Of a stretch of DNA of 64,000 nt, positions 4,801 through 63,845 are shown one piece after another. The notes beneath the pieces were generated by a model. The model saw nothing but the letters and a program-made list of their open reading frames with translations. It made no database searches and was not told the origin of the DNA. Each line of letters opens with the position of its first letter. Within the stretch, counting starts at the first letter, position 1. Origin of the DNA: Setoptus koraiensis (lineage: Eukaryota > Animalia > Arthropoda); the NCBI GenBank assembly GCA_048013815.1, contig CM106585.1, positions 16,926,001 to 16,990,000 on the forward strand, written 5' to 3'. Made by a program: the position numbers and the translations under genes.

Positions 4801-5081
4801 ATACGTAGCCAAATATGGTCACACATGTGACTCGCATGATGTGAGTGTATTGTTTTTTATGATGATGATGATGATGGGAAAACGGCCCACAAACGACAAG
4901 TGTTAATGACAGAGAAAATGATGTAATCATCGTGACAATGACACGACAGCCAATGACAGCTCTGGCCGCTAGTCGCCGGCGAAAGGGCCGCCGAAATGGC
5001 TCAACGTTGTCAGTTGGTCAGTTGCCGTTCGAGATGAGAATTGTTGCTCGGCGCTGACCTTGACAAAGCTAGCTTGACAAA

Positions 5082-29243: not shown

Positions 29244-29880
29244 GAGTAACTCGAACGATTGATTGTTCATACTTTGACCGTCATAAAATCTTTTCCGGTG
29301 GGGTACGATCATTAGACGCCCATTCTTTACTTTTATTGTTCATTTTTTGACATCAAAGTCCGGGTTCTCAAACATTGCTTTGGATCTGTTGTCATCAAGC
29401 AGCGTACCGGTCTTCGCCGGTTCATCTTCATTTGACACTGCTGTTTTGTTATCATTAGTTTTCGCAATTCGCTTCTGGGGCTATTTGCCTTTTATTCTGC
29501 ATTAATTTTACCGCAGGTCTGTTGTTCCCATTCGGCAAATCTAATAATAACTTGACTGATAACTTGTATTCTGTTCTTTCGCTAATCCTCTGATCTGGCC
29601 TTAATCATATTGCGATGATATTCTTTGGACGAGAATGGATTCGATGCGACCAAAGTGCAGGGCCTGAAATCCATAAATATTGGACTGGTCACTATGTTTG
29701 TGCTAACATTTAGCATTTCCAAACCTTGTATCAGCCCGCTTCTGAGGCGTAGCTATTTGTTTTTCTTTAACAATTGACGCCTTTCCTATCCATCAACCAT
29801 TCGAGAATTGCTTTCCTCGTGCTCATATTGTAAATTCATACATTAGTAACTACGGGGATCAGAATATTAGTTGTCTCAAC
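29244..29880 (-). pseudogene. NOL10: Degenerate NOL10 copy with a central deletion of about 1 kb
   Basis: About 29680-29880 aligns to NOL10 35500-35700 (TGGACTGGTCAC(T/A)ATGTTTGTGCTAACATT, TTTTTCTTTAACAATTGACGCC). About 29244-29680 aligns to about 33950-34470 (CAAAGTC(C/G)GGGTTCTCAAACATTGCTTTG, GGATTCGATGCG). The start ATG is changed to ATT, there is an early in-frame TGA, and there are indels. Confidence 0.9.
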
Positions 29881-29941
29881 GCAATTGTTTTACATTGTAA
29901 TTAGTGGATACCAAGTGCTACAGAAGCCTTGATGAGCTCCT

Positions 29942-32134: not shown

Positions 32135-34127
32135 TGTGAAATTGCTGATTGATTTGACTTTGACGCCTCGATCTCCCTGGAGGGGGTTACAACATATAAC
32201 TGGCGCAACTGTAACTTTCTCGGATGCTTATAACTGTCGATATAACTGACTACTATCGTCTCGTGTCGATAACTAACTGGAACTGAACTTGGTCTGACTC
32301 CGAACTTGTCGCGCGTATCTCCTCTAGATGCGTTCGCTGGCGAGTTGCTCAGGTGACTGATCATGGTGAGAAATTGTCTCTCAGTGTCAGCGCCAGGATT
32401 TGTTTGTCGTCCCATCATTTCAGCAGGCAGCAATACGGCAGAGAGAGAGCCGGGCAATTGGCGCAGCAACAAGTTTTGTTGACCATAAAGATACAGTTTG
32501 TTTGCAGCGAGCAGCGTTTGTTTGCACTCGGTTCTGTTTCATTCTTTTCTCTCGCTGTCACTAATCAAAGAATCATCATCATTATTTGCTCACTTGCTCT
32601 TCGAACGTTCGCCTGTTCGAATGGTCGAAGGTTCGGAGGTTGGGAAATAAACAGCAGCATCGTCAGCAAACAGTATTCATCTTCTGGTAACAATGCATCC
32701 TGGATAGTGGCTACGCGTGAATATTTACCAACCATCATTTGTGTTCAGTGTCGCGTCTCACAAGTGCGAGACTCGCAGGAGCCTCGTCGGACAGATCAGG
32801 TGACATCCACAAGCATAGTCGCTATGCAGAACGAGCCCAGATTTCGCTTGGCATTTTTTTCTTTGGATTTGGCGTTGCCCGGCGAGCATTCTCAGTGCAT
32901 GCTGAACTGCGTCAATCGCTGACCGTTGGCGCGATCAGTGGTCAGAATTGCTTTCTTCTGGATATTTGCGGCGTGGATTAAATGATGATTGCTCAAATGG
33001 TGCAATTTGGTCGGATCAATCGTCGTTTGAATTTGGTTGTTTCAGACATGCTGTCGCCGTTGTTGAGTCGCCATCGCCACTAGCCATCGTTATTTGCGCG
33101 CTAAAATAAAGTAAATACCTCAAATCTTGTGTTCGCAGGCGAGTGTCGCTTCGGCTCGCACGTCGTCTCACAAGAACGCCGACTCGTGCAACTCGTCGTC
33201 TCACCTTGTTGCCAACTTTGTTCTTAACTGTTTCGCCCGAATGGAAATTGGCCACTGGCAACACTAGACTCCATGTCTAGTGTGTGTGTGTACTGTTTAC
33301 CTGTTGCCAGCGACACGCAGAGCTATTTCGAAGCGCGAATTCTCCCTCACTCTGTCGCTTCTTTTGGCCAAAACTTCTTTGGGCTGACTGTGCAAACAGA
33401 AAATAGACCGTCGAATGGCGCTGTTTGCTCAGGTGCGCTTAAGCGAATAACTGCAGCCAGAATGAGAGAATAGGTGCGAGAATGGAAGCGCAAATAAAAA
33501 GTGTGACACACAGTATAAATCACAATAGCCACTATTTCACCACCACTGAGACAACAAATATGCTGGCCAGAGAATTGCGCCGTGATGGTGCTGCTATGAA
33601 ATGAATCGAAATTAAATCGAAAGAGAGCAAGCGATTTCATGTTTGCAGAGCCACCTTGTCTGGCAGCTCCGACGGGTTCGATGCAAAGACTAAAACAAAT
33701 TCTTGCTGCAGACACCATGGCGAAAGCATCGATCTTGCAACTATTAACTATATCCGGACCAATGTAGAGAGTCAGTTAGACTAGCAGAGGAACCAGAGAA
33801 CGAGAAATACTGAATGAATGTCGAGCGTTGTTGCAGCGATAAGGTCCTCGCGACGATTGTGCTGCAGACCAGCAACTGTCAACATGTGGCAGCGATATTT
33901 TGGAAACACTCGATATTTGGCTGTCAATTTGTTTGAAAATGTATTAGTAGTAACTCAGCACGATTGATTGGTGATACGTCTCCGACCGTCATAAAATCGA
34001 TGATGTAGTAAAGTTTGTGTTAATCACAAACTTTTTCACTCGGGTCAACCTGACTCTCAAACCTCTTGGTCCATCCGAATCTATCAAGCGCGCCATCATT
34101 GGGCGGCTATTTTTTAATTTTAATTGT

Positions 34128-35687
34128 TCACTCTTTGACCTCAAAGTCGGGGTTCTCAAACATTGCTTTGAATCTGTCGTCATCAAGCAGTGTATCCATC
34201 TGTGGTCTGACTATCTTCGCCGCTTCATCTTTATCGGAAACCGCAGTTTTGTTACTAATAGCTTTCGCCTCCTGTGCAATCTGTTCTTTCCGTTGCATCA
34301 ATTTTGCCGCAAGTCTTTTGTTTACCTTTGGCAGAGCTGATATGACTTGCACTCTGTTCTTTCGTTCATCCTCTAATTTTTCCTTAATCTTATTGCGACG
34401 ATATTCCTGGAAGGCGAACGGATTCGATGCGGCTTTTGCCTTGGTGTAAAGCCTTATATCCATGAAGAAACCATGCATGTAAGCACGCAAAAGATCAGTG
34501 CCCACTAAATGATCGATACCTAATTCTTCTAGTTCTTGCATAGTGACAAACTTATAGTCGTCATATATAATATTTTCTGTTATTTGTTCTTCACATTCCT
34601 CAGTTATTTGGTCCAAGAAAGAACACCATCTCGGTGCTGGGCCCAATGATGGAATGTAGTAAGGTTGTACTTTCTGACCTTCGTTTGTTACAAGGATCAT
34701 ACCTGTCCCTGGTAATGCACAGAAACTATTAAGATCTTTGTCAGGTTGTATGGCTGTAAAGGTTTCACCGTTATTTCTATCCCAGAGTTTTATCACTTTA
34801 TCGTCCAGTGAAATTACCAAATCATGATCATTTGATGTGTTGTGAAAATCTAAAGTTTTTATTGGCAGACCAAAATAATGATCTTTAATGATGTAAGGCT
34901 TATTGGTGCGAATGTCAAACAACATAATCTGTCCTGTTTGTGTGCCTACTGCTAGATTAAGATTATCTTTAAATTTCATCGATGTTACCCCTGGCAATGA
35001 TATGTCAGAGTCTGCTTGGTGTGTAGTGTATCTTGCACAATCGAATGAGGAGACGATTTTGGTGGATGTTCTAGCGTCCCAACATTCAAGAGTCCCCTCT
35101 TCTGAGCCGGCTACAGTCAGTTGGAGATTGTTATTAGTTATGCATGAATTGAATCCCGAACATTCAGAGGTGAATGATTCGACAAATTGGCCCAAGTCCA
35201 AGTTCAATCTATAGATATCACTTGAGGCGCCGCATGAGTACATAATACAATTACTACAATCGTAACAGAAGTCCCTTCCTGGCTTGGGTATTCTGACCTT
35301 GTAGTAGAAACCATGGGCATTGTGAAACTCTATGTGTCTATCAGATTGTAATAGAGCCAATTTGGTCCAATCCTCTGATAGGAGCATCATTTTTACACAC
35401 TCAGAGTCGAAGCATCTCTCAAATTTCAGGCCTAACTGCTTAAAATCGTAGCATCTCACGCGAGGTTTGTAGAGGCCAGAGACAAATAAATAGTTTTGAT
35501 CTGGACTGGTCACAATGTTTGTGCTAACATTTGGCATTTCCAAATCTTGTATCAGCTCGGTTCTGTGACGCAGCTCTTTGTTTTTCTTTAACAATTGACG
35601 CCTTTTCCTATCGGTCAACCATTCGGGGATTGCTTTCCCTGCGCTCAGATTGTAAATTTTTACATTGTTAACTACTGAAATCAGCAT
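34128..35687 (-). CDS. NOL10: Nucleolar protein 10 (Enp2 homologue), 519 aa, ends just after the NUC153 motif
   Basis: Start MLISVVNNVKIYNLSAGKAIPEWL (ATG 35687); GLYKPRVRCYD; YYIPSLGPAPRWCSFLD; IYDDYKFVT; LLRAYMHGFFMDIRLY; DDRFKAMFENPDF. Confidence 0.95.
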   Translation of the reverse strand: MLISVVNNVKIYNLSAGKAIPEWLTDRKRRQLLKKNKELRHRTELIQDLEMPNVSTNIVTSPDQNYLFVSGLYKPRVRCYDFKQLGLKFERCFDSECVKMMLLSEDWTKLALLQSDRHIEFHNAHGFYYKVRIPKPGRDFCYDCSNCIMYSCGASSDIYRLNLDLGQFVESFTSECSGFNSCITNNNLQLTVAGSEEGTLECWDARTSTKIVSSFDCARYTTHQADSDISLPGVTSMKFKDNLNLAVGTQTGQIMLFDIRTNKPYIIKDHYFGLPIKTLDFHNTSNDHDLVISLDDKVIKLWDRNNGETFTAIQPDKDLNSFCALPGTGMILVTNEGQKVQPYYIPSLGPAPRWCSFLDQITEECEEQITENIIYDDYKFVTMQELEELGIDHLVGTDLLRAYMHGFFMDIRLYTKAKAASNPFAFQEYRRNKIKEKLEDERKNRVQVISALPKVNKRLAAKLMQRKEQIAQEAKAISNKTAVSDKDEAAKIVRPQMDTLLDDDRFKAMFENPDFEVKE

Positions 35688-39775: not shown

Positions 39776-40972
39776 TTCGAAAAATGTTATTCTGGTCTGA
39801 TTAATTGAGAATGTAGCGAAAAATATCAGAGATACAACCAATCAATGAGAGAGACCGGTCGCAAATAATAGTCACATTGGCGCAACACATTTCTTTTATT
39901 TAAGCGCCAAATTTAGAATTTCCCTTCCCCAGAGAAAGTTTCTCACTGAGTTACCGGAGTGAGTTTCTGTTTTCTCTCGGTGGAAAAATCTAACTCGGTT
40001 TTGTCCCTACACTGTCCATCAAAGAACCAGTGTCTCAGGCCGTCTAAGGGCCTTCTCGGACCCCAGCGTACTCAAAATGGTGAGAAAGCGGCAGAATCTG
40101 CGACCCATACATGCCACTACTTTCTGCCTGATATTCTAGCTTTTGGCGATGCACACAAAAAGTGATAGCTCTTGAGTGAATTGATTTGCGTCAGACAGGT
40201 GAGATCTGCAGACAGCTATAGTTAAGCCGCCAATCCGATTATCACACAGCTAATCCGATTCTGTTTATCAGTGCCGTGTATGGGGCCCAGCGCGCTATAT
40301 GTTGGGGACCGGGACTGTACAGATAGAATGCTGTCCGGCAGCCAGGATGTTAGTGACACAACGAAAAAGTGCAGCACCAAATCATCGTCGCGAAAGATAG
40401 CAGTGGACGAGGGATTTATAGTTATGACTTTAGGCTCAAATGCGGAACCATCACGAGTGGGCCCCATAGAAAATCCGGGCTAGCGCGCATGTCGCTATAG
40501 ACCCTGTAGGTAACTATTTACTATTTGCGCATGTCGCGTCCCTCTCATACTGCAATCCTATAATATTTGTAAATTGTCCAACGTAGTTTTTGGTTGATAT
40601 TCAGCGGGGACAGATTCCTTTTTCATTGTTGCTCTTGCACAAAATGAGAATCATCAGAGTGACACTGACTATATGTCACATAAGAGATTAGAGTAGTACC
40701 ACAAAATCAATTTCAACACTTGTGACTCGAATCGAATCAAGAATTCACCTCTTCATATTTTCATCACAAAACAACTGACAGTGGATCGAATAGGATAGTT
40801 GAATTTTTCAAGCCAAGTTTCAAGCCAGTGCAGCTCAGTTCTACAGTAGATAACAACAGTAGCCAATCTAACAACAAGCAGCATAAACAAAAATATGTAC
40901 AACAAGGGATCGATAACTGGAGAAGAAATCATTGAAGACAATCAGAAAAAAGAATCGTTCAACAGACACAAA

Positions 40973-41462
40973 ATGACCTTCAGCGCAACACAAAAATCCA
41001 TCATGATTGCTAGTTTGGCCATTGGCGCCGTCTTGGTTATCGCATTGATGGGCACGCAAGTCGAGGGTCGTTACCTCCCAACGAGATCCGACGAGAGTAG
41101 GCTAGAGTCATTGAAACAATTGCTGAAAACGGTGAGTTTTCATTATGGTAACAAACCAGATAAAATAAAAACACAAACAGCCAGCCTGATTGATCGCACA
41201 TGATTTATATCTATATAATTGCCTTGTTTGCCTCATTGTTCAATGTTAGATGTTGGATTATAATCAAGAAATGGAAGAGAATCAAGCTGCTAATATCTGG
41301 CCAGCAGCCATTCAAGCAGGTCGTGGTGGCAATTCGGCATTCGGACAACGTGTTCGTTCTAGCTATCATAAACGATCTCCAGAACTGGTAACGGACATGG
41401 CGGAGAATGATAATAACGTGCGCTCTCTCAGTATGGCGGAGGTTCCTGTATTGAATCGATGA
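40973..41462 (+). CDS. Proc: Proctolin neuropeptide precursor, 123 aa. Exons 40973-41131 and 41250-41462
   Basis: Signal peptide ...AIGAVLVIALMGTQVEG followed directly by RYLPT (41069-41083) and an Arg cleavage site (RSDESRLESLKQLL). Donor ACG|GTGAGT at 41132, acceptor GTTAG| at 41249, phase 0. Confidence 0.92.
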
Positions 41463-44400
41463 TGACAGAAACATAACAAGTAATAATAAGTTACCGGTTA
41501 GTCTTTATTATCGTATCGTATTCATAAAATATGAACTTATTAGACTATTCCGAGATTGAAATTAAACAACACAACAAACTGGTTTAGAACCTACACAGCC
41601 CTATAAAGATTATGTTGAATTCATTATCATAATTATTATTAATAATCATTTGAAAGAAAGTGTGCGACAAAATTCAAAACGAAATTTGCGTGCTGTCTCA
41701 CTGATCCCAACATTAGCTATACGTAACAACAACAACAACAACAACAGATGTAAACAACAGTAACAACAGAGGTCTCTTTTGGCTCATTATATCACGATAT
41801 AATGCCGGCTGTATGATGTAAGAGAGACAGAAAGAGAAAAGTTTGTTTAAATAACGAATCCTTAGTTTAAACAGTAGTATATCTGACTATCAACAATAAA
41901 GAGAATAAAACTTGAAATTGACAATGTCGATGCGAACTATCTAAAACAACAACATTCTAAACAATGGATGGTACGTAACAGTATGATGATGATGATACAC
42001 GGATTGGTTCGAACTGATCGATTGAATTGATAGTCGACAAAGGATGAATGATGCCATGCGCCATATAGCACGACCACGCGGGCCAAGTTTAGCGGTTGAT
42101 CTAGTTGGCAATATGCACTCGTCACATCGATCTAATAGCGCAAATAATTGTTGTTGTCAACATCAAACAGTACGAGTAATCTATATCAACAATATTATGC
42201 AACGAGCACAGAGACAATACAACCGGAAACTGGAGACAATAACAAACGTTTGTCACCTAGATGTGATCACAATAGAGTGGCCACAAATATGCGACATGGC
42301 CCAATATTTTGGCAAGACCGCAATGGTGTGTGTGTGTGTACGGGTGACAGATTGTGTGCAAGTCTATCGAAGGGTGTACGTGTGAGAATGTGTGCGTGTT
42401 GAGATGGTGGGTATCGATCGATCGTGAGACAGGTGAAATCGGTTGGCCCTCCTTTTAAAATAGTGATTTGCCTGTATCAAGGGGCCCAGTAGAGACAAAC
42501 TAACAGCTAGTTACGGTTCGTCGATATTACACAAGAGATTATTTAGGAGAGGGAGAGAGCGATAACAGAGGAGAGTATAACACAGTTTAACCAAGTTTAT
42601 CGCCACTATATGTGGCTGTGTGTGTCTATAAATTGTATGTGTCTAACAATTGTAAAAGTCTAATAAAGATTATCGTTAACGGTATACAATTATCAAATTA
42701 TCAAATTGAGCACGCAAGGCAACGTTGCGCACCACTCGCAGGCCGTCAGTCGTTCGAGGCAGTTCGAGGCAGTTCGAGGCAGTTCGAAGCATTTCGAAGC
42801 AGTTCGCAGCAGTTCGACGAAGAGAGCGTTGTCGAGCGAACAGTTCGCCCGCTCCTCTCTTGGGTGCAGGTCGTGTCCAAGAAAAGATAAACTCTCGGAT
42901 AAAACTTGTGTCATGCGAGTGATTCATATAAGTTATCCGGCGCGATCAAGAAGCCGAAAGTTGATTTATTGCTCATCGGTTATGAGGTGCTCGTTGGCTT
43001 GTCGCAGGCAAAACAACCGATGCTTGCGACAAGCCCCGTTCACCTGGCTTGAGAGGCTCGTCTGACTTGAGGGGCCAAATCTGAGGGGCGAACAGATAAT
43101 ATATGGGAGTTGCAGCCCGTTAGCTGCGAGGGCGAATGGGGGTGATTGGGGGTGAGTTGTTGTCGTTGGTGTCGCTGTTGTCGTTGCTGTTGGACGACAA
43201 ACAAAAGAGCCCGACAAGTTTATCATTACGTAATGTGGTGCTCAAGTTTTGACAACAGGCCTACGAAATTCAAAATGTGCTCGTGTACGTGTGCGTGTTT
43301 ATGCGATGAATATGATTGTACAATTTATGGAAACATTTCGTAACCAATCTTAATATATAATGCGCTATAAATGTAAATGTTGTTGCACAAACAACATAAC
43401 ATTTACAGTTGATATATGATCAGATTCATTGAATGGTTGCTCACACAGTAGACTCTACTGTAAGTATAGACACACAATAGAATGGAAATGGCCTGAAATT
43501 GGGCTCACTGAAATGACGTAAGCAAGCAAGATGATGCAAGAGATATGAACATTTTACAACAACACTTTACATAGTAAATATTAACCAGTTAGGGCCAGCT
43601 AAAGGGTTGACAACAAGGCTTCGAACGGGGGCCAAGTGAGCGAAATTGGCAAACGAGCAAACGTAACGTGTGACATGTTTATTCAATTTGTTGGAGGTTG
43701 TCGGGGAGGGCCCCACTTTGGTAGTCATACAACAATGATGACACAACATTTATATTATTATATTCTATTATCATCACAAACACATCTGGCCAGATTTTGG
43801 CACACGCATTTTATATGTGTGACTGTTTATACACGGCGACCACCGCTCAGTTTGTATCTAGCTAAGTTTGTATCTACAAACTGGGCCTGTCGCTTATAAA
43901 CTGAGGCACCCGATATTTCATGCCAGCAATATATTTGCCGGCAATAACGCGGGCCTCATCGCGCTTGACAACACAACAACGCTGATTATGAGTAGGTAAA
44001 TATTGTTGTTGCTTAATTCTAGTTATCCGCAATATTGTATTCATTATTGTTTGCGCGCCCGGCGGGGGGCTACGTTTATGGCTACGGGCATGAGCGTGGC
44101 CCGATGAAGATAGCGTGTCGTTACAAGTCGAGCGTGTTAATCGCAGCACCGACGAATAATCAGCCGACAACCTAGACGACATGTCGGGCTACAGCTCCGA
44201 CGACAATTCGGCCGACAGCTCCGACGATAATTCAGACGACAATTCGGGCGATAGCTGCGACAACGGCAGCCTCATTATCAAGTGGTTGCCGCAGCGGGCC
44301 AGAGATAAAAACCGGCCCCATTACGGCGGCCCACTTGCGTGCATGTTTATCTTATACGTGCGTCGGGCCGCCAGTCCGAGTCCGTGTGTCCATTGAAACA

Positions 44401-45534
44401 TGCAAAATTGCAGCTAAAATTGCCGCGTTATCGCGCATTCATATTTCAACATGGTCGCCCAAATATCACAATTTGAATTTATAAAATGTGCTAATGAGTT
44501 GCCCGACGATGAGCGGTTTGTTTGCACGCACCAACACACTGAATATGTATTACGCAACATTGGCATATTTGTAAACATTGGCCCCCGGTTGCGTCATTGA
44601 TCGTGTGGCCTATGGGTCAGTTGCAACAGTGCCATTGTGTCCTCTCTCTCTCTCTCTCTCTCTCTATGTATATATATATCTGTGTCTATACAGACACGAG
44701 CTTGCCACGGATAAACTTATGCGCGTTAGCACGCGCAGGTGACGCAATCAATTATTTTCAAGGCGCCACCTATAACACAAATAGCAGACACTCACAACTA
44801 AAAGTTGTATGTGATAACAAGCTTAACATGGCCGCTTGCCAATGGTTAACAATGGCATGGCACCGCATTATATTCGTTGATGCCAATAATAACAATAATG
44901 AGTATGTTCAAGATATTGCCGCCAGGCGCAGCTGAATTTTTGCGCTGTGTCGTGGGCGCCCTCCTGATTAGTTGTTGCCAGGGGTGCCCCTGCAACGGAA
45001 GCCGCTCGTTGTCGTGGTCGTTGTCGTCGTTGTCGTCGTTGTTGTTGTTGCTGTCGTCGTTGTTGTTGTTGCTGTCGTTGTTGCTGTTGTTGTTGTTGCT
45101 GCTGTTGTCGTTATTGTTGGCCACAATTGCCATATTCAGATAGCAGTGGTGCACAATTGTCAACTGTCGCTTTGGTGCACATTGCGTGACAATGCAAAGT
45201 GCGCGCTTACATGTTACGTAATGTTGTCAGCCATAATAATGATGCAGCCTACTTATGCCGTTGACCGTTACCCGTTACCTGCGCGCACTTACCTGTGCGT
45301 ACGTCACCTATTACCCGGCCCCCGCGCTACGTCAAATGTGCAAAACCAATGCTGCACACAGCAGTGCAAATCTCGAGTGCCCCAATCAAACCCAATAATA
45401 CACATGGATGATGATGACGATGATTGCGCAATGTGTGTGTGTGTCGTCGTATTTGTGTTTGTGTACGTCACAATGCACCCACCACTGGCTTGCTAAACAA
45501 TATGCATAGCACGACATGGTCACTCGTTAGCTGG

Positions 45535-45595
45535 CAACAACAGCAGCAACAACAGCAGCAACAACAGCAGCAACAACAGCAGCAACAACAGCAAC
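45535..45595. repeat. (CAACAACAGCAG)n minisatellite in apparently non-coding DNA
   Basis: Four perfect 12-bp copies plus a partial copy; the surrounding frame has no recognisable protein. Confidence 0.85.
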
Positions 45596-48500
45596 CCCCA
45601 CTTACTATTTGCGACTATTAGGTAATCTTTTATATATCCGATTGCGCCGGCACGATTGCCTGCGACGCGATTATAGTGGGCGACGCGCCGAGACGGTTTG
45701 TTTGAACTGGGGCCAAGTGCAAAAGCGTCACCTTGCCAAGTCGCATTTGGGCGCCGTTTCGAGCAGTCGTTTGTGTCCGGCTGTCCGGCACGACAGCAAA
45801 CATTCCACGATGCCGTTGGCGCGCCGGTCACTCGGCCCGTCACTCGGCCGGTCATACGGCCGGTCGCGCGGCCGGTTGCACGGCTGACCAGCGGGCCGGC
45901 CGGCCGGCCGGCTCTCTCTAATCGAGAGTCTCGATGGCCGGCTCGTTGATGGATAAACAATCGATCGCCGCATGGCCAATATTGGCCACAGTTTGTGAGA
46001 CGCTTTGTGAGACAGTTCGCGGGCGCCGTGCCGCGCCCGAACCGGCGCCGGATCGGGCCGCTAATGGACAACAGATCGGACTCGTCTGGCAGGAAATCGC
46101 GACACTCGCACTGCGCCAGTCGCACAGGTGAGACGAGCGGTTTAGGCCGCGATCGATGGCGCCGGTGCGATGCTTATTGCGCAATGATGGCAATGAGCTG
46201 TGCAGTATGGAAAATCAGCCATCATCCCAATTATCACACTACCTTCACTACAGTTCCAGCTGACGTCACCTGATGCGGCGACAACTGGTGCCGCCGACGA
46301 GCGCTAATCACTCGCGCCTACTACAACTGTAAACAGGTGAGCGCCGGCCCCAATCAATGCTTGTCTGGGGCCCCTTCTTCTTGGCCTCGCCACTGCTGCT
46401 GTATCGATATTGCTGCTGTATATTGGGGATGGATAATTTTTGCTGGCGAAACTGATGGCAATCAAGCCGGCGCGTTGTTGCTGGAATTTGGCTGCGATGT
46501 TAGCGCGAATTGGCGATAGGCCGCGATTCTCAGGAAAACACAAGCCATCGCGACACAACGGCAATTCTTTTCTTGCTCGCTCCATCGCCACTGTTGGCCG
46601 AATCAGGCCAGCCAACCGGCCAAGCAGTGGCACTGTCTAGCCAGGCTGTCTGACCGAGTCTGACCGAGTCTGACCGAGTCTGACGGACAAGGGGCCGCAG
46701 AATAGAACGGCAGAATAGAGCTAGAGATTATTGTGCCGACATATGGGATTATTCGGGTTGCCGGTGAACAATGAGATCCCATCATAAGAACGAGACAACA
46801 AGACGCTGAGACGCGCACAATAATGAATGACCGGCGAGCGCCGTTGTCGTCTCTGGTTGCCTGTTATTGTTACATACATGTCGTTTCGTTACAACGGGGC
46901 CCCTATTTTTATCTCATCATTATCCGATTAATGTTGTCTGCAACAACTCCAACGGTAACATGCTTATCGACATCGGCATCAACCAGCAACTTGCCACCAG
47001 CATCCATCTGTGATTGTTTGTTAGCGTCCAACAAATAATCAAGGCCGGCCAGCGGTCTCGGCGGGCCTCGTCCATTGCCCGGCTTGTCCGTTACTCGGCT
47101 TGTCCGTTACTCAGCTTGTCCGATGGCCTGACTGTCCGTTACTCAGCTTGTCCGATGGCCGGCTTGCCCGTTGGCCCAACTGTCCGTTAATGTGCCAACT
47201 AATGACAACAACAATAAAAATAAAATGAAGCATTTTCATTCGCTGGCGAGCTCGCCTCTATCGATCATAAATTAACTTGCTGCGAACAAGTAAACATTTG
47301 CATACGTTGCGAAGTTATTATACGTGCTTTCGCTATTGTGCTTGCTACATCCATTTATAACCATTTATCCAGCTTGCTGCAAAAGTTTATTATTTAACCG
47401 TTTCATTACAACTATGCGAATGCTCTCATTTAGGTGCACACATTAATGGAATGAGACGCAACGAATGAATGGGCCAGATATTGGCCCCAAAACTTGCCAT
47501 TCGGTCTGGTGCTTGTTTAATTAATCACGACACATTCGCATGAGATACTCCTGTCGTGTTACTGCTGTCCAGCTGAATATATGCATCGATGATAAATTAA
47601 AGCTGCTCATGCAACTCGCTTGTGACTCGCAACATTGCTTAACATTGCATCAGCTTATATATTGTTTGTTTTGTTTTGCCAGTTGGCGGCCCCTTTCGAA
47701 TACGGGCCCTCACTGGCCATGATAATTGGTCTGACCGACAACAATATTCGACAGCGACATCCGACAACAATATCCGACGACGACCACATGTGCGACACCG
47801 ATATCCGACCACGATGTCCGAGAGCGCGCGCGACAAACAATGGTGACTCGTTATCTTGGCTACGCAACAAATTAACCGGGCCATTGACGAGAGTTAATTA
47901 GTTGGCCATTGTGACATCAAGCCCCGGCTTGTGAATCCCGCAAACAGTCTGGCCAGCATTTACAGAAATTCATGGGGTCATGCCAACGGGTCGAGGCGAT
48001 CACCATTGCGTAATTTTTTTTTCTGTGCTTGTTTGATTTGTTCGCGTTTTAATTGGCGTACGTGAATTGTTTGGGTCCATCAATCAAGTTCAATCTGACA
48101 CACAGTTATATTGACGAAATCAGGTACGAGATACAACGGCTTCCATCACCTGTGACCGCCTGTGTACATCGCCTAGCAATTTCCCCGGGTTTGCCCCAAC
48201 GCATGCACTCGCCAAATTGGTACAAGCCGAAACGATCTACGTGACCCCTATCTCGCCATTCATCGAGATAATAATAGCCCTAGATAGCTTGCCATTACGA
48301 CGACGACGATCAGGGTATGACCCCTCTGTTGTGCATAGGTGCATCATCTATTATTATTGATAACATCGAGAGCTATAAATATCGACAAGCAAATGGTTGT
48401 GGTTGTTGTTGTTGTTGGTTACAATTGCCAATCATCTGATGAATGCAGTCGATGTTGTTATCGGTGCTGTTATCGATGTGGGCCAATCAATGATATTGGC

Positions 48501-50376
48501 ACGCACCAAGGCAAAATAAGCAAATGAACAAGACAACTAATCTAGTCACTCACTCAAGATATTGTGTTGGCCATAATCCATTACGTAGTGCACTGGTGTA
48601 ACAGCACAAATCAATTGTGTTGCTAATCGTTTCGTTGTTGATTATCTAAAAAAGATGAAGAAGTTACATTAATTATTGCGTCACAATGACACACAAAAAC
48701 AATCATTCAATAGAAATATAAAACAATTTGACGCAATAGAGAGACGCTCAACTCGATGAATGTTTGTGCTCTTTCACGAAATGTGAATTGACGAAATGCG
48801 AATTGACGAAATGTGCGCCTGATGTGCGTTATTATCATTTGAATCATTCAATCAATTCAGTTATTATCAATTAAGTAAGATAATTGGTGACTGAGAGCCG
48901 CCAGTAAGCTGATAAAATATGAGCTAAATGAGAGGAATGAGCCTGTTAGATGTAACGTAGTAACGTTTCGGCAGTGACAATAATTGTTGTGGCCCAACAG
49001 GCGACGCTCTGAACGCGACATGAATGAATGAATATACCCTCTGTGGCTGTCATCAAACTTTCATTATCAACTATATGATAACTATGATATATAACAACAA
49101 ATTGTGCATTTACAATTGTTGGTTACAATTGTGTAAGAGGACATTGTGTGAGACGACGACTCACACTCAAATATCGCTAATTATTATAGCGATACATAGC
49201 TCACTAGACGCTATAGTGACTCACTAGGGCGAGATAGTTTGACTAATTAATTGTGACGTTCATCAGTCTAATCATATCGGCCTAATATAGGTAGATGTGA
49301 TCTTATAATCTATTGCTGCTGTTGATATTATTGTCACCAACAAACTAGTTGCCTCTAACTTGTACTTGGCTATCGCTGACTTAAATGTGACTTTTCATTA
49401 TCTTTGATTTTATTTTATAGTAAAGTACAGCCAACGATTGTTGATTTGATTACTGTTGAGATTGAGATAAATCTTGTTCCTTTGTGTTTGTGTCTTATAT
49501 GTGATTCAAAGATTGTTAACTATTATGTGACGTTCTCATATACTACATGATATGCATCAAAAACAAACTGCATATCCACCCACCCTCAGTACGATCGTCC
49601 TTTGGTATGATGATACTCCAAACACTTGCTAGTTATCGGTGATTGTTTGTTTGTCTGGTCGTCGTCGTCGTCGTCGTTTGTTGATTGCTCTAATTGAAAC
49701 CACCAATAACTTTCAGTTGCAAGCTTCAAGTGCCAACTGAAAGAAGGAGAAGATATACATTAATTAAGTGAGTAGAAAACATTTCAAATGTGATCGCTTT
49801 TCAAAGGGTGAAACCAACAATAAAGAACGTTATCAGTAGATACAGCGAACAATGTTTATTGATACTGTTAGTTGTGTTTTCTATCTACATTTGTTTTTTT
49901 TTCTGACAATTTGTTTGAGAGCAACGTGAAATATTATTAATTAGTTGGTACGATGCAATCGGATGTATCACGACAATCCAAATATTCTACAGATATTATC
50001 GAACATTTTCTACTTAAAAGGCCGCCGTCTTGCAATTATCTAAATTACCCTACGAGTAGTGAGGTTATATAATAGTCAGCAATGAATTAAATGTGTATTA
50101 AATATTTAAAACTCACTGGTATCCGCGTGCTACCGTATCAGTCAAGTTAATAATTGACTCATAAAGAATTAGCAGGCGAATTTCACTATTGTTGGCACAA
50201 AACATTACGAATGTTCCATTGAATGTCCCACTACTCTTGACAAATTAAACATGACCAATACATCGACCATCAACAATTATCAAGTATTAACATGAATTAA
50301 AGTCACTAATTATTGATCATCGACAATGTACAAAAAAGACTGTTTATTTACGGAATTTATTGTTGCTATGCCGTCA

Positions 50377-50439
50377 AGATATGTTTGATATTCTTGGTTG
50401 TTGTCAGTTTCATATCCAACTGAGAATCAAACATATTCA
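50377..50439 (+). ncRNA. mir-190: microRNA mir-190 precursor hairpin
   Basis: 5p arm AGATATGTTTGATATTCTTGGTTG (50377-50400) matches arthropod miR-190-5p as I recall it. A 16-nt loop follows, then the 3p arm CAACTGAGAATCAAACATATT (50417-50437), which pairs along its length with one 2-nt bulge and three G:U pairs. Confidence 0.93.
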
Positions 50440-52170
50440 TTACGTGATAGACAACAAATCCATTCAACAACACCTCAAGTACACTTTCAATCATTGAGCA
50501 AAGCTTGGACTTTCTGTTGCTGTGAAAAAGTCACAATGAATTGTTTCAATTCGAATAGACTTTCTGAAATGAAATGCAACTGCTCTCATCAATGTCGACA
50601 GAATCAGAAAAGTCAAAACATTTTGCGAAAACTCCGCAAGGTTTATTCGTTAATTTGTGCACCGTTAGAAAAAGGCGCCTGGTATGTAAGCCGGTGAGTT
50701 TTAGCTAGTCAAATAATCTCCATCCAACTCAATTCGACAACAAATAAGATCAATGCTCAGCAGTAATTGGACTCAACTTACCTTATAATATAGAATGCCC
50801 TTGGTTTAACTCACAATCCGTAAATTTCATCATTCATAATATTGGCCGGTGAGATTGTTGACTGTGGTCCAAGAAAATAGATATTTACATAAATGCGAGA
50901 TCTGAGTGAATTTAAATGGCTGCCCCATAAAGACATTGGAAGTCAATATTGGCCCATCTCTCAACTGGCAAACAGTCGGGGAAAATCCCTATTTTTCGAC
51001 CTCGTCGTACCTCTTGGATGGTTCCGAAGCGTAGCAAGATCTTGTAAACTATAGACCGGTAATTATCGTCCATGGTGCTGCTATTTCATCTCGTATATGC
51101 CATGTTAATGTGAATTGTTGAAAATAAAACGCCAGCATATCTCTACAAATCTTTTCTACTCTAGGTGCCACTTCAGGACGATGGAAGCATGACATTTATT
51201 TTTCCAACCCGATGATATTAGAGACTCGGACTATTTATTTATACTAGATACACCTCACATAAGCAAATCGATCCACCGAAACAAGTATTAGCTTCGTAAT
51301 AGATCTCTCGACCAAGCCTGTAAGTGATTTTATTTACCTTGGGCCCCGCTCGGTCCTCCCGTCCTTCTTTGGCTTGCACTATCTATCCTAGCTCACATCT
51401 CGCATTACTAACTAGAACAACAAACGATCTAATCATCAACAAATAAAAATAGAATATATTTTTCATTTTATTGTTATTAATGCCTTATTTTAGCAATGTT
51501 TTATAGCTCTATAACATGGCTGCCGTCGAAAGCGACACCTTGGGGTAGCCAAGCTATTGTCCATAGACACTGTAAGCCAAAAGCTGCTGTTTGTGGAGAA
51601 AAACTATCGAAACAACAAATTGTTACGTCGTGATTTTAAATAAGATCTGAGGCTAAATTTGACGCGGATGTTGCGCCACCAGCAAGACCGATGAGACAGC
51701 GTATCAACAGACAATTAGGCGTCTTGTATAATGTACAACCTTGTGACCTCGTGAGAATACAGCCGATAATTATTATTTTTATGAGACGTAGCCTCAATGG
51801 TAAACTATTTCAGCCGAAATTCATAATGATTCGGGTCTAAATCTATCAATGCGAATCAATTGCTGATGCCACCGTACAATCTTTCATTCTGACGGCTTCA
51901 TTCATCCATCTTTTATATTTCTTCGTCACAGTCTTACAGCAGTTGGTTCCACATAGAGACAATTGCCCTCATAATAGGTCAATGTATTTAGGCTCGCATT
52001 CCAGGCCTCAGTATTTCTCTTGATTTGTCAGAAAATTCCTCTTTCAGTGTTGTCTTCTCATTTTTAAAACGAAATCTTTGAATCAGTTTCTACACAAAAC
52101 GAAATCCCTTTAGCGCGATTATTGTGTGCATCCATGTCGCTCATATCCACTCGCGCTGGGATAGAGAACC

Positions 52171-52221
52171 CTAAATCAACATTAAGTTTTTGCTAAATCA
52201 ACTTAATGTTGATTTAGTAAA
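52171..52221. other. AT-rich 18-bp perfect inverted repeat with an alternative inner arm
   Basis: CTAAATCAACATTAAGTT (52171-52188) / AACTTAATGTTGATTTAG (52200-52217). A second CTAAATCAAC at 52193-52202 can pair with 52208-52217. Confidence 0.85.
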
Positions 52222-54035
52222 AAAAACAAGACTTGCAAAACTTTTTATGTACAATGGATTATCATAGTTTACTCAGTAAATCGACTTTCATTGAGTAATC
52301 ATTTGATAGACTTATGTGAGGGCTGAAAAACTAGTGTATAACTATTATTATTATTATATTATATTATAACTAATTACTCTTGAACATTTATTGCAGCGAT
52401 CGGCAATAGAAGATTGAGATAATGATAGAAAGTAGTGCTATATCAACTGGCGCTTAGGTAAGACCTGATTCAATAATCATGATAAGGTATAGAAAGATTG
52501 CGCTGATATTGCTCGTGAGAGCTATTTCTGGGCTCACTCGAAACTCAAAGTAAAATTACAAAATATATATCCAAATACCTATCCATCCGGCAAATAGTGT
52601 GACGATGAGTTAGGCCGGGAGCAAACAGTTGGAGGAGGGACCCAGAAAGACTTCAGCTACAACATACAAGCTAACTAATCGCATAGCACGTAAACTCACG
52701 AGATGTTTTTTGTCTCCAATACTGTATTCCGAGCTGGAAATTTTGACAGTAGCCACAAAAAAGTCCACACACAAATACAAATAATTTAATAATACAAATA
52801 TCATGTAGTTATTCAATGGTTTCGTACATCCACATCGACTAACCAACCCACCTCATAAATGAATAGTGATTGCTTAATTTAAATATTGAATGCGACACGC
52901 ACCAAAACTGTGATTGAAAAAAGATCAATCGGATTTCGGGGGTTACTTTCTGAGTCTTTCCAGTATTTGAAGCGGTTAGGGCATCTGTAACGTTTCTCAA
53001 ATTTCGCTCTGAAGACCTTTGGTTTGTTGCTGTCCTGTAAATGTATTTAGTGGCTGGTTTTTTATCTGGTTTGGTAGACTTATTGCAATTTTACACTGTT
53101 ATGAACAGTGGCGATCAGCATTGTGGTCACTCGCAGAGATTATTTGATTTATTTCGATTTTTCGACCATCTCAAATAATTGAGTGAAAATTTTTTGATCT
53201 TGATGGTCGCAATCAAAACTGGTGTGACATCCTGCTCGATGTCACAATAATGTACAAATAACGTCCATAAAACGTCCTTCTTATAAATGAGAATGTAAGT
53301 CAAATTTTTCTCCAGATTGAGCGATAGTGATATGTGACTGATATCATCAGTTTAACTTGTGCTTATATCACACGAGCCAAGAACATGGAATTATACATGA
53401 TTATTTGGTAACATGAGCAATGAACTATTGAGATAATAGTGCAGAAAATAATCTCAGTGACCTCTAGTGACCGATAAAATCAGTGTCACCGAGTGTCGTG
53501 ATAGGTGCAAATTTGTCGCAACGACAGGTTGCCTAATTTTACGGCAGTGTCTCTTGTAGGCATTGGTTAGTATGTCATGCCATTGGCACTGCCAAGAACA
53601 AAACAGAATGGCAATCAAGCACAACCTACGATGATCTATAGAAAGAAATGCCTTACTGGTGTCCGAAAAAAATAAACATACACCAATCGACACAATTCAA
53701 ATTAGCATCGAGCATGAATAATTAGTAGCGAGATAATTGCGCGGTAACTGTTGTCGCGTAATAACGACTTGTTGCAGGACTTATTTTTTAAGTTTGTTGG
53801 TTTAAAGTGTAGCTTTGAGCTCAACTACAAACTCACTTTTACTTTAATTTTGTTGTTCGGTGGTTCTCGATTTGTGAACTAGGTTTTGTTCTGAACTGCA
53901 ATAGCTAAACGGGACTGTGAGTATTGTGCCAATTTGTGGCCTGACAATTGCTTGTTGAACTGCATCAAGATCAGACAATAATGTGACGTGATTAACCTCA
54001 CCATTTAACCTCAAGATGGACCCATGGCCAGCTTA

Positions 54036-56082
54036 TCAGATGGATAAATTGAACACGTGATTCAAGATGGGTCTCAACAGAGAGTCGGCAAGCTTGAATA
54101 TTGTAACAATGTAACCATTTGCGCCGCCGAATAAACTATCCACTTTATTTGGTGAGCTGGTCACGGGTGATTTTGTTGAGTCAATGGAATGGTCTGGCAA
54201 AAATTCTTGCGCCATTACGACTTTTTGGTCTGGATAAAAAACAGTTTCAGGGACAGTGCTTGCTACTGTTGTTGTTGTGTCGGTGTCTGATGCGATAATC
54301 ATATCATAGTTATCATATGCAAAAGGATACTCTTTTTGAGCTCTTCTTCTTTTTGGAATGAGGCGAGTTGCAATTTCGGGCACTTTAAGCAGAGTTATTT
54401 CGCGCGTATATGTTGCCCAAGAGTTTAAAATGTCCATTACGGCACCGCTAAAACCACCCGAAACAACTGGCCCCGTTTCCGGCGTTGCCTGTTGATTGAA
54501 GCGGGCCGCATCGCCAAACCTTCTCATGTAAGAGGTCGAGCTTATTCGCTGGAACGGGTCGTCCTGTTTCGTGGCCAATCTAAATCGACCACTAAACTCT
54601 GGTTCCTCCAAAATTGTGACCAGTCTCTCTGGATGGTTTGTCATTATGCCGTCCACATGCAACCTAATTATGGTCGATAGTGCGAGTTAAAATGAGCGAG
54701 AGCATAGGTCATCTCATTAGCTTATGTTTGAATTAGTGCCCGATGAAATTATTTGGGCCCCTTTTGGATTATTCAAATGGGCGCATAAGGTTGCATACTG
54801 TTGCAGCATTAAAAAAACATGCAGATTTTTGTGAGGCCAGATTGAACAAAAATTCTGGCAATTCAATTGAATCGCAATTAGGGTGAATTACCTGAGAGCG
54901 TCCCTCATGCGATCGTGCAAATCTATTGTCCACTGATACACCTTGCTCATGTAACCGCCGCTGTTGCGTATGGCCAGCGCCCTGCTGAGCCTATTGAGAT
55001 TGTAAAATGGGCTTATGCAATTTGTAAATCCGTCGCCTTGCCACAAGTTTAGCGTTGTTCGAAACTTTTTCCACATGCTCTCTATCAATTTGATGTCGTC
55101 GTTCATGCCAACGTCCCAGCCAATGTGGCGCATTAAATTGTCTGAATTGTTTTGATTGATGTAGTGCACAAAATTGAGCACCAGATCGACGTCTGTGGCG
55201 TGATTGACGGACAAAATTGTGTAAATTGGCTGAGTGATATTTGTATACAAATGTGCGCTAATCATTTTGGCCAATTGAATGCCCGCGTTCACTTTGGCCT
55301 GATGGCTCAGAGGTTCCAATTTAAGATCTAGAAAGAGTAGGGTCAAGTTGCGGCCATTGAGTCGACCGTTGACTGATCGAATCGGGGGCAAAAATCGTGG
55401 ACAACAATATAAACAGACGACAAGAATCATATGATGAGAAACGTAATTAATTAATATCACTATTATAACAGACAAGCGACGTGATATTAATTAAGTTGAA
55501 TTGAATTAATTAGTGCCTGCGTTAGTCCTACCTGGATCAATCAATTCTCTGGTGTGGCGCAAATAGTCGGCGAAAGTGTCCCGTTGATTGCAGTGTCTCA
55601 TACAATCGCACGGGGTTCCGTGAAAGGTCATCAGTGGTGTTCCGGACGCACTGAAGGTGACATCCGCCTCTATGGCGTTGGCGCCCTTGCTGGTTGCGTG
55701 ATTGATAATTGCAATTGTGATATTTGCATAGCACAATTGATTTGCATATGGTTATTGGGGCCGATTAACGTTACGTAATTGAGTGATTGATTGGATGTTG
55801 TGTTGACAAAATAAGTGGCGCAACAATTGTCGCAGTCGCAACTCACCTCAGTCTGTAGTCCAGTTCTCTGATGGAGTTCACCATGTGCGCAATGTTCCAA
55901 ATTGGCCTCCTCGGATCCATGGGGCTCGTTTCGTCTGAGGCTTGAGCATTGGTCGGGGCATGTTGCGCAATCAGCAACAGTATGCATGAACGGGCTGCCA
56001 TCAGCGACAACAATTGTCTCAATGGCGTCGCATTGTTTCGGCCATTGTCCGCTGGCCTCACTGTGGCGTTGTTGCATGTCAT
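54036..56082 (-). CDS. Sphingomyelinase D / phospholipase D (SicTox-like, class II), 500 aa. Exons 56082-55847, 55689-55532, 55372-54892, 54663-54036
   Basis: RRPIWNIAHMVN (His12), GANAIEAD (Glu32/Asp34), FHGTPCDCMRHC (His47, Cys51/53/57), LLFLDLK, HIGWD, WQGDGFTNC (Cys201), KVYQWTID, VDGIMTNHPE, RLAT..DDPF. Three GT-AG introns with matching phases; total 1503 nt. Confidence 0.93.
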
Positions 56083-57790: not shown

Positions 57791-60550
57791 GCGGAAATAT
57801 TCATCCATGAAGGCGCCATCGCAATGGGACAAGGGGGGGGGGATATGTGTGCCAATTCACGCAGCGGCCATTACAGTGTCTATACAGTTCATTTGGCCAG
57901 CTCACTTGATTAACAAATCTTTGTGCCTTTGTGGCGCAAACTGCTCGCAAAGTCCCATTAAGTTTGTCTGTTGTAATAGTCAAGGCCGACAGAAAATAAA
58001 ATAGAGACAGAGAGAGATAAAGAAATAATAAGACTAGAAGTAAAGCCAACGGAGTTCATTCAAGGAGTGTGTGTGTGTGTGTGTCTGAACTCCACTCCAG
58101 ACAACATCAGGTAGACTTGAATTACGCAACAACTCTGCTGCCATTATAAATAGGTAACAGGTGCTTGAGTTTGTTTGAACAAGGAAATGGAGTTCATTTT
58201 ATATAAAACTGGAATAAAATTTATAAAGGTAAGATGTTGGCAGGCGAGGTGTGACTTTGTTAGCTGCAGAGTTGACTCCTTCAAATGTCGGCACCGTGTC
58301 TCTCTGATTGATTTGTTAAATTTTTAATTGCACGTATACACATGTATTCATATATAAATATATGTTCATATGAATGCACGCAGCAACATCAATCGTCATT
58401 GTAGTCGTCACAGCAAGGCAAGGTGTTGCTGTCTTTAACAACCACTGACTAAACTTTAACTTTAGCTTCAGCTTCAACTATTAGCTTGTGAGTTTGATTT
58501 CGACTTTAACTTTGAATTGATCACGTAACGCACACACAGTTGTGGATATTATTATCACAATACACGTTTATATCTAGTTTGCATCTGATGCTAAATTCTT
58601 TGGTTCCCTCATCACGTATCATTTATATCACGTATATCTCGCCCTTTGCGGTGGCACTACAGTAATACAGTAGTAGTAGTATAGTAGTAGTGGTGTAATA
58701 GTAGTAGTATAATAGAAGTAGTTGCGACGGATGCTGCAGCTCCAGTAGAAGAAGTGGTGGTGTTGTTGGTGGTTGTTGTTGTTGTTGTTATGGTTGCTGT
58801 TGCTGTTGTTATGGTTGCTGTTGTTGTGGTGTTAATGGTAGCTATTAAGAGAGTTTTATGTGTAAGATATTGCCATGGTTGCTAGACTCAATACCATTAG
58901 AGTTACGGCAGAGTTACAGCAGAGTTACAGCAGAGTTACAGAGAGAATAGTGGATGTTGGATAGTATACAAGTTGAGATAAATGTTTAGTCATTTGCGCA
59001 AAAAAAAAGATAATGTATGATTGTATCTAATCGGAAACAACGCACAACTACCAGCACTTCTAATAATAATAATAGTAATAATAACGATAATAATAGTAAT
59101 AATAATAGTTGTAATGATAGATAGATAGATAGATAGAATAATGTTTTATGTTACATGGACTTGTAGAGATGTAAAAGTTGAGTCAGTTGTTCAGCTTGAT
59201 CAGCTTTGACAAAATACATTCTGACTTGTCTAGTCTTTTCTCCTACTTCACCCTGACTCGGTGTGTTCGACAACGGCGACGACAACGACGGCGACGCTGA
59301 CTCCGGCGACGACCAGCCCCCAGAAAGACACTACCGCAGACACTATATCAATAATGAGGCAAGCTAACAAACAATAGTCAATAGCTATTGATTCAGCTAC
59401 TCAGTACACGAATCTCTCGTTCGTCAGTCAGTTTATTATCTCACCTGTTGCTGTTGCTGGTGCTGTTGATCAATCAAACAGCAACACCGGCTAGAAATAG
59501 CTACCACCAATACTAGAACAGAGAGAACGGATCAAATCAATTGAGTTATATAACACATGAAAATTGTTAGCGACAACAACAATAACAAAGTCTATAATTA
59601 CCGCTACAATCTTCTCGTGTTTTGCTAGTTTGTATGTGTGGTTGTTCAAGAACTATTACACAATATGACATTCATTATTTGTTAATAAGTGTTGGTTGTT
59701 TGCACCCAGTTATATAGTGTGCAAACAGTATATTACAACCAGTATACAACAAACAGTTTAGTTTTAAACAATCTTTACGACAATTATAGTAACTCATCGA
59801 TCGGCAGCAATTGAACAAGCTCAGTTCATTAACATCCATTGTTGGTAATATCACCAGTTAACATTACCGCCAGAGATGTGATGAAATTTCCACACAATCA
59901 ATCCACAATCAAATACCAACAAGTTGAACAGCAATCAACATCATAAGATTAGAATTTTTTCGTTGTGTACACCATCAGGTTATCCCTATGAGTCAGTATC
60001 GCTAGAGTCATCACAGAGACACAACTATCATCTAAACATCATAACAACCATCATCAAACCAGCCAGCGAGCTTACAAAAAACCGGCCACGTTTGCCACGG
60101 ATTTTCCCTTTATCATTTGTTTGCAAGTAGGCGTTAATGACCTGATTAACGCTATATCATAGTATTCATATATGGCAACTCTCTACATGGCGTCCACATT
60201 TCAGTCAGCGTCGGAACAGATGCCAATAGTTGACCATTGTGGTATTTTGAGCGAACCCAAAATCCCATTAATGTTGCCCCCAGTGATTGAGTATCCATTA
60301 GCATCGTTAATAGAGTGTATGCGATTAATTTTATTTATATTTATAGTAACGGTTTCAATGACAATGTCACAATTGGCCACCTCAACGTTTGGCCTATTCA
60401 TGGATATTGTGTCAAATTTCGACGAACACTTCCTAAGGCTAGTGCCAGTGATATTCACTTGACCACTTGGACACACATCTCAATAAATTAACAAAATCTG
60501 AGGAAACATTATCACTATGTAACATAACATGTTGTCTCATTTGACACAAT

Positions 60551-62060: not shown

Positions 62061-63845
62061 ATGGTGATGCCAGATGAAATGACGGAAGTAAGTAATATTA
62101 TTTGTCGAACACACATATTTTTATTTGGCTGGCGTAGGTCACCATGCAAATCAATCGCCACAAACAATATCAGTCCAACCACGAGCACAACATATGACCA
62201 TCTCAACAGAATATCACCAAACTGAATTTGTCCATTCGCTGTTATAATATTCTCTTATTCTATCATGTTCATTAGGGTTTGCCTGCCGGCACAGAGGTCG
62301 TGGCCAGGTATGACTTTGAGGGAAACTCCGACAAGGACCTGCCATTTGACAAAGGCGACATACTCACTATAGTATCACAGGCAATGGACACTAATTGGTA
62401 TCATGCACAACATGTCGACGGCAGAAAGGGTCTCATACCAGCCAATTATATACAAAAAAGGTCCGAGGTCAAACTAAATTCTATGCCATGGTTTCATGGA
62501 AAAATAACCAGAGACGAAGCAGAAACACTACTTCAGCCAAGAGAGGTAAACACAAACACCACCCGATCATTGCCAGTGACTTGTCACGGATGCTTTTGAA
62601 CGATTCAACATTGTATTTTCTTCTAACATTATTTCTTGCATTCTTTTTTTTTCTAACTATGCAATCAGGATGGCTTGTACTTGGTCCGAGAGAGCACCAA
62701 TTTTCCAGGAGACTATACCCTGTGTGTTTGCTGCAACAACAAGGTAGAACATTACCGAATTATATTTATGAACGCTAAATATACCATCGATGAAGAGGGC
62801 TTCTTCAGCAGTTTAACAGAATTAGTTGCGGTGAGTTCTAACTACGAGGAAAAAATAACTCTCTTGTAGTTTCCGGCCTGACATCTATTTCATCATGATC
62901 ATTTCTATCATCTTTCCACTCTGCCCCTACTCAATGATACAGCATTATCGACACGACGCCGATGGTCTTTGCACAGCACTCAAAGTTTCAGTACCTAAGA
63001 AAAGCGATAGGGGTGACCTCAAGGCTTTCGAGGCAGCCGGATGGGTCATCAAAACGAAAGATCTCAAATTTTCAGGTGAAAGTCTTGGCAAGGGCGAGAC
63101 TGGCGATGTTGAATTAGCTCTCTATGGACACCAGAAAGTAGCAGTGAAAAAGATGAAGGATTGTAAAGAGGCCATCAATAGCTTTCTCACCGAGGCCAGT
63201 GTCATGACATCACTGAGACATAAGAATCTAGTTCAATTACTTGGAATAACAATCGACAGTCCAACCATTTGCTTGGTCACAGAATATATGGAAAAGGGAT
63301 CTATAGCAGAATATTTGCGCTCTCGTGGACGCTCAAGAGTTTCTAAGTATGATCAAATCAAGTTTGCCACCGATACATGCGCGGGAATGGCTTATCTAGA
63401 GTTGAAGAAAGTTGTACATAGAGATCTAGCAGCCAGGAATGTTTTAATATCCGAAGATAATACAGCCAAAGTCTGTGACTTTGGCTTAGCCAGCTACGAT
63501 AAATTGGTCCAACTCTCTGGCCCAGTTCCAGTAAAATGGACAGCCCCCGAAAGTTTGAAATTTGGAAAATTCTCATCGAAATCGGACATGTGGTCTTTTG
63601 GAATTCTACTGTATGAAATATATTCATTTGGTCGCATGCCATACCCCAAACTTCTCGCAGACGATGTTGTTAAGCGCGTTGAAAATGGGTACAGGATGGA
63701 CGCTCCAGATGGTTGTCCAAGTGAAATCTATGATATCATGAAACAAGCATGGTCGGCTGATCCAAACAAGAGGCCCACGTTCGCTCTTGTTCTAAGCAAA
63801 CTCGAGCAGTTAAAAGAAACCACAGATGCATCTATTTTTACATGA
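62061..63845 (+). CDS. CSK: C-terminal Src kinase, about 453 aa. Exons 62061-62087, 62276-62545, 62669-62830, 62943-63845
   Basis: SH3 ([19 protein letters not shown]...NWY...GLIPANY), SH2 ([21 protein letters not shown]), kinase ([23 protein letters not shown]). No activation-loop Tyr and no C-terminal regulatory Tyr tail. All splice junctions are GT-AG, phase 0. The first 27-nt exon is less certain. Confidence 0.92.

Follow-up and report, generated by a model that had tools for sequence, protein, structure and literature searches.

Background

The microRNA gene mir-190 has a textbook position in animals, in sense orientation within an intron close to the 3' end of talin, and the relation between this miRNA and its host gene has been documented (PMC2702505; PMC3675212). 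The canonical arrangement is represented by Drosophila rhea and by vertebrate mir-190a, the latter within TLN2 intron 51-54. The talin-hosted intron is the usual genomic setting of mir-190, but does not define the family. Vertebrates also possess a second paralogue, mir-190b (human 1q21.3), which lies outside either talin gene and so has outlived or left its host; it is a product of the genome duplications of vertebrates, with a mature sequence slightly different from that of mir-190a. In chelicerates, extra copies of mir-190 accompany whole-genome duplication in scorpions, pseudoscorpions and horseshoe crabs (PMC8136511), invertebrates being otherwise described as single-copy for mir-190 (bioRxiv 10.1101/2021.09.01.458616).

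In this study we analysed the mir-190 hairpin found in a 64-kb stretch of DNA of the mite Setoptus koraiensis (hereafter the window, G000:C1:16926001-16990000), taken from an assembly of 48.76 Mb in two contigs, C1 and C2. This mite has one of the smallest animal genomes. The hairpin of the window shares with canonical talin-intronic mir-190 the family model, the arthropod 5p arm and the hairpin geometry, but it has no talin exon within the 64 kb or on its chromosome, and both its 3p arm and its basal stem are its own. As in the chelicerates with duplicated genomes, more than one mir-190 gene occurs here in a chelicerate; in the mite, talin is single-copy and no paralogue of a talin neighbour lies near the window copy. 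Compared with vertebrate mir-190b, the window copy is likewise placed outside talin, but the 5p arms of the two mite copies are identical.

Results

Identity and fold of the window hairpin

The Rfam model of mir-190 (RF00672, gathering score 48 bits) matched the + strand of the window over its full length (model positions 1-78) at 50368-50448, the mir-190 precursor, with a score of 64.8 bits and an E value of 1.5e-10, whereas the - strand of the same hairpin reached just 26.6 bits. When positions 50360-50456 were folded with RNAfold, they formed one hairpin extended by a basal stem of ~12 bp (-31.1 kcal/mol, z -4.49), and 0 of 200 shuffled sequences were as stable. This confirms the well-paired + strand mir-190 hairpin reported in a preliminary description of the same DNA, whose interval 50377-50439 corresponds to the 5p-loop-3p core. 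The complete pri-miRNA-like stem extends over 50361-50455 (+); it is a single stable hairpin, its basal stem is suitable for Drosha, and it keeps the pairs found throughout the family. The miR-190-5p arm (50377-50401) has the mature sequence and seed of arthropod miR-190, and its first 24 nt are also those of 31 arthropod metagenome loci; the 3p arm lies at 50416-50438. By every defining feature checked in its sequence, the window hairpin is a member of the mir-190 family. Its setting differs: the window copy is not located, in sense orientation, in the talin intron that precedes the I/LWEQ exons, a position that is occupied by the copy on C2 described below.

Other miRNAs with which this hairpin might form a cluster were sought in 40-62.5 kb with Rfam at a relaxed threshold, and mir-190 was the only one returned. 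An RNAfold scan of 41-60 kb gave GC-rich palindromes, none of them supportable as a miRNA.

That the locus represents an assembly artefact or foreign DNA is very improbable. We found no supporting point for such an origin, and the hairpin is surrounded by mite genes within a contig of 24 Mb, in a region syntenic with a sister species up to 42.7 kb. Moreover, of the words sampled from the 6-kb stretch bearing the hairpin, a fraction of 0.80-0.98 was present in sequencing runs of four studies.

Surroundings of the window hairpin

The hairpin is contained in an interval of ~12.8 kb (41204-54035) without a credible protein-coding ORF, as judged from the ORF list and from Pfam, in agreement with the ~12.5 kb free of long ORFs previously described. 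The interval is GC-rich between 44 and 48 kb, where microsatellites and a dispersed short repeat occur, and AT-rich between 48 and 54 kb. Only two ORFs of more than 120 aa were found in 41.2-54.0 kb, at 44972-45496 (+) and 45520-46125 (-); both are of low complexity, belong to the GC-rich microsatellite zone and lacked any Pfam match. The same zone holds an element of ~60-120 nt (44999-45129 and 45534-45595 in the window), of which well over 100 copies, 80-90% identical, exist on both contigs, often locally clustered and in both orientations.

Upstream, the nearest + strand gene codes for the proctolin precursor (40895-41203), in which RYLPT comes right after a signal-peptide-like stretch, and to which a syntenic, 65% identical ORF corresponds in the sister species. 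Downstream, the nearest gene on the same strand is a Csk-like kinase (62279-63845), with Pfam matches to SH3_1, SH2 (start of the domain) and PK_Tyr_Ser-Thr; both neighbours are those named in the preliminary description. On the - strand, two genes separate the hairpin from Csk, namely a short-chain dehydrogenase gene and a sphingomyelinase-D-like gene (54036-55475), the 3' end of which bounds the interval. The latter is related to spider dermonecrotic toxin, the most distant homologue listed for it being dermonecrotic toxin SPH.

Just past the hairpin, by 180 nt, begins a non-coding segment of ~2.3 kb (50628-52908, +) with one paralogue, on the other contig (G000:C2:24187527-24189665). The two copies are 67% identical over 1.65 kb (50628-52268 against C2:24187527-24189179), with runs of 15-23 identical bases, and two short blocks prolong the match to 52908. 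Similarity extends to all frames, and the window copy has stops in every one of them. The C2 site of this segment lacks mir-190. The C2 paralogue (L047 6527-8665) starts where a 183-aa ORF ends, a donor-like GTGAGT site coming next.

The neighbourhood was compared with that of the sister species (run SRR33593474), in which the talin exon is 97% identical. One of its contigs (L049), retrieved with proctolin as anchor, is syntenic with the window up to 42.7 kb and stops 7.7 kb before the position of the hairpin; another (L011) approaches from the right and reaches ~53.7 kb, i.e. ~3.2 kb downstream of it. When the sphingomyelinase-D-like gene was used as anchor, five loci were obtained, none of them with mir-190, and the contig of the sole close relative among them ends before the hairpin position. 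In the sister species this gene has a different location, being followed by the counterpart of 59.8-60.5 kb of the window; therefore the interval between the hairpin and Csk has been rearranged between the two species. More precisely, the counterpart of 59764-60463 directly follows the 3' flank of the sphingomyelinase-D-like gene in L011, so that the blocks 53668-56016 and 59764-60463 are either swapped in order or part of a tandemly repeated unit in the sister species. Two other features of this comparison concern regions away from the hairpin. The block 60155-60463 shows 88% DNA identity to the sister species, against 75-79% for neighbouring coding sequence, and has open frames on both strands. 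In the opposite direction, the window holds ~4.3 kb that are extra relative to L049 between the DUF747 gene and the NOL10 gene (29346-34134), comprising a 730-aa ORF at 29942-32134 (-) and NOL10-like fragments at 29346-29647 and 29681-29865.

These data bear on the idea that the hairpin is intronic in a host other than talin. Such a host might be a non-coding RNA that is spliced and unannotated, or the Csk-like gene, which lies 11.8 kb downstream, if its 5' UTR has a long intron. Csk is on the same strand with no + strand coding gene in between, a gene-free interval of 12.8 kb is large for a genome of 48.8 Mb, and the segment starting 180 nt downstream, with blocks perfectly conserved against its C2 paralogue, could be part of such a transcript. 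We nonetheless consider another host quite unlikely, as the two - strand genes intervene between the hairpin and Csk, and the rearrangement of that interval in the sister species argues against a conserved transcription unit across it.

Talin and a second mir-190 on the other contig

Talin was absent from the window: its own exons, used as queries one by one and not as a joined protein, gave a best E value of 1.3 in tblastn against all 64 kb. The assembly holds a single talin gene, on the other contig (G000:C2:672687-676951), coding for a short protein of ~1257 aa in four exons, its best named match being the talin of Fragariocoptes setiger. The Talin_middle profile had one match in the genome (C2:673860-674315), and I_LWEQ and Talin_IBS2B matched the same locus. 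The only other match of these models in the genome was that of I_LWEQ to an unrelated ORF of 947 aa on C1, 3.3 Mb from the window, which we take to be a HIP1/Sla2-type protein. The talin gene is largely intron-free, with a single first coding exon of 2.5 kb, and keeps three small introns at its 3' end. In the coordinates of the extracted locus (L005, C2:672001-682000), exon A (687-3164) codes for FERM, IRS, Talin_middle and rod segments and is followed by intron 1 (3165-3274), exon B (3275-3937) with Talin_IBS2B, intron 2 (3938-4212), exon C (4213-4290), intron 3 (4291-4396), and exon D (4397-4951) with I_LWEQ.

Intron 2, of 275 nt, has GT and AG ends, lies just before the I/LWEQ exons and carries a mir-190 hairpin on the same strand (L005 3988-4073). 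In a search of the whole genome the family model recovered exactly two loci, that of the window and this one (C2:675988-676073, +, 58.3 bits), the latter folding at -34.9 kcal/mol with z -7.6. The copy on C2 is the canonical talin-intronic arrangement, retained in this genome. A pattern search for the mir-190 5p sequence with up to 3 mismatches added one site only, C2:3779171-3779194 (L050 501-524). It was rejected as a third mir-190, for it has 3 mismatches including the seed, forms no stable hairpin (z -0.53), and scores 15 bits to mir-50, of the same clan; this 24-mer is probably due to chance, or is possibly a decayed third copy.

The preliminary description had suggested that the window hairpin may have been relocated or left behind after loss of its host intron, in which case the locus would show how an intronic miRNA survives intron loss. 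The absence of talin from the window fits that reading, as does a talin gene largely devoid of introns with its 2.5-kb first coding exon. Locating talin in the assembly upheld the part of the claim that concerns the lack of a host at the window, and contradicted the rest, because the talin intron has not been lost and still contains a mir-190, which makes the window hairpin a second copy. Given, in addition, that the hairpin in the talin intron is 97-98% identical in the sister species, the view of the window hairpin as the only mir-190 of the genome, displaced from talin, is almost certainly wrong.

Distribution of mir-190 in relatives and metagenomes

The position of mir-190 near the 3' end of talin, to which the preliminary description had also referred as the usual one, holds throughout the other loci that we surveyed. 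In three related mites the hairpin was found after the last large talin ORF and before the I_LWEQ ORF (L010, 62.5 bits; L009, 57.5 bits; L007, 53.1 bits), and in the sister species it occupies the same intron (L051), the differences from the S. koraiensis talin copy affecting two loop positions only. Thus, 5 of 5 mite talin loci carry mir-190. The exact 24-nt 5p sequence was found in 31 contigs of JGI metagenomes, representing 29 distinct hairpin sequences, and in all 31 of them same-strand talin exons flank mir-190, at the same exon junction. No talin-free mir-190 was found outside the window among the mite talin loci and these 31 contigs, and one related genome present in the JGI metagenomes provided no talin-free contig bearing the exact 5p sequence. 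Bacterial and archaeal genome contigs, screened as possible contaminant mite contigs, had no exact 5p match. Short contig pieces from four other runs of the same studies, compared at 80% likeness, reach the 5p arm only; one that matched this arm ran on into a 3p arm of the talin type, CAACCAAG, of another species. For Aculops lycopersici, the supplementary miRNA listing of the genome paper contained no mir-190 entry in the files consulted.

Some of these loci have features of their own. The talin-intron hairpins of L010 (6848-6928) and L007 (8296-8389) have a T-to-C change at 5p position 22 (GGTCGT in place of GGTTGT), because of which both were missed by exact 24-mer searches. An arthropod contig (L046 746-911, JGI contig Ga0194133_10119932) contains two tandem mir-190 hairpins, 142 nt apart, in a talin intron, a duplication kept within the host. 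In S. koraiensis, the 120 nt of intron 2 located 3' of mir-190 (L005 4090-4212; G000:C2:676090-676212) are ~97% identical to the sister species (L051), whereas the 5' portion of the same intron, like intron 3, reaches only ~70-75%; the 120 nt form no stable hairpin (z -0.63) and may represent a second constrained element of the miRNA-bearing intron.

Comparison of the two copies

The window and talin copies are identical at 25 of 25 nt of the 5p arm. The two loops are different in both length and sequence, no alignment of the flanks is possible, and only a hairpin core of 60-65 nt was recovered when the loci were compared by blastn. The 3p arms show 4 differences, every mite talin copy having CAACCAAG and the window CAACTGAG; two of the changes in the window turn Watson-Crick pairs, one G-C and one U-A, into G·U, and all 18 upper-stem pairs are kept. 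The basal stem covaries, with 6 pairs changed on both sides in an alignment of 18 sequences. Among the mite copies, that of the window has the top Rfam score (64.8 bits, against 53-62.5 bits).

The sister species was used for calibration. Apparently neutral DNA, represented here by intron 3 of talin, the 5' portion of its intron 2 and intergenic DNA by the proctolin and sphingomyelinase-D-like genes, is still 70-80% identical between the two species, while the flanks of the two mir-190 paralogues are unalignable; we therefore infer that the duplication is old and predates by far the divergence of these species. If 40% or more of flank sites differ, the probability of finding 25 sites unchanged under neutrality is, by our estimate, 0.6^25 or ~3e-6; purifying selection has thus most likely acted on both hairpins. 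In principle, gene conversion could also maintain a short identical stretch in the absence of selection on the window copy.

The same comparison is relevant to whether the window copy is a silent relic, i.e. a duplicated hairpin that still looks intact and is unexpressed or unprocessed. We regard a silent relic as rather unlikely. Consistent with it, no orthologue was found among the mite loci reached, the contigs of the sister species ending on either side of the hairpin position, and a search with a strict pattern of TATA box and initiator element (Inr) gave no recognisable promoter near the hairpin. A relic would, however, be expected neither to keep every 5p position and every upper-stem pair once flanks and loop had diverged beyond alignment, given the neutral estimate above, nor to score above the talin copies with the family model.

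Discussion

A probable second mir-190 gene independent of talin

Our analyses favour, with a probability of about 0.6, the interpretation of the window hairpin as a functional second mir-190 gene, independent of talin and paralogous to the copy in the talin intron. The negative searches for an orthologue in the mite loci reached, for a talin-free contig in the related genome of the JGI metagenomes and for a promoter of the strict TATA plus Inr type speak against it. Since the hairpin has no talin host, it is predicted to need some other transcription unit. Transcription of the window copy would proceed from its own non-coding unit or from an unannotated one, and the transcript would be cropped by Drosha/Pasha and then diced by Dicer-1. 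The expected products are a miR-190-5p the same as that of the talin copy and a different 3p species. The likely effect would be a supply of miR-190 that depends neither on transcription of talin nor on splicing of its 275-nt intron.

Two routes could have led to this second gene. It may be either a DNA-level duplicate of the 3' region of talin, all exons of which have since decayed, or the result of the insertion of a small fragment comprising little beyond the hairpin. No talin exon remnants were detected near the hairpin by tblastn with each exon, and no paralogues near it of the genes neighbouring talin in 30 kb of C2. The sole weak match of the latter search (E 4.85e-05, 38 aa) falls in an exon of the Csk-like kinase at 63.2 kb, ~13 kb away. 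The lack of any talin-neighbour paralogue around the window copy speaks for an event of small scale, and small-scale duplication is also the better reading because talin is single-copy and the genome tiny. As the segment at 50628-52908 begins so close to the hairpin, the latter lies at the edge of another duplicated segment, a position that may bear on its origin.

Retention of the host intron and uncoupling from talin

Few miRNA-host relations in animals are as stable as the pairing of mir-190 with talin, seen here in all the metagenome contigs and mite talin genes surveyed. The original question of how intronic miRNAs survive intron loss is not addressed by our finding. As far as the sequences tell, the data suggest retention: a talin gene without half of its rod and most of its introns still keeps the miRNA-bearing intron, in which the hairpin and ~120 nt downstream are nearly invariant between the sister species.

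A broader interpretation is possible, about which we remain doubtful. The talin-free copy might be an old, eriophyoid-wide and independently transcribed miR-190 gene, which would uncouple the supply of the miRNA from a drastically shortened talin and add a new 3p (star-strand) seed, in a lineage midway through a host switch. If this were true, the talin intron could then be lost without loss of the miRNA. A talin-free copy of mir-190 in a genome that has not undergone whole-genome duplication constitutes in any case a small natural experiment, and could show whether the function of miR-190 depends on its co-expression with talin.
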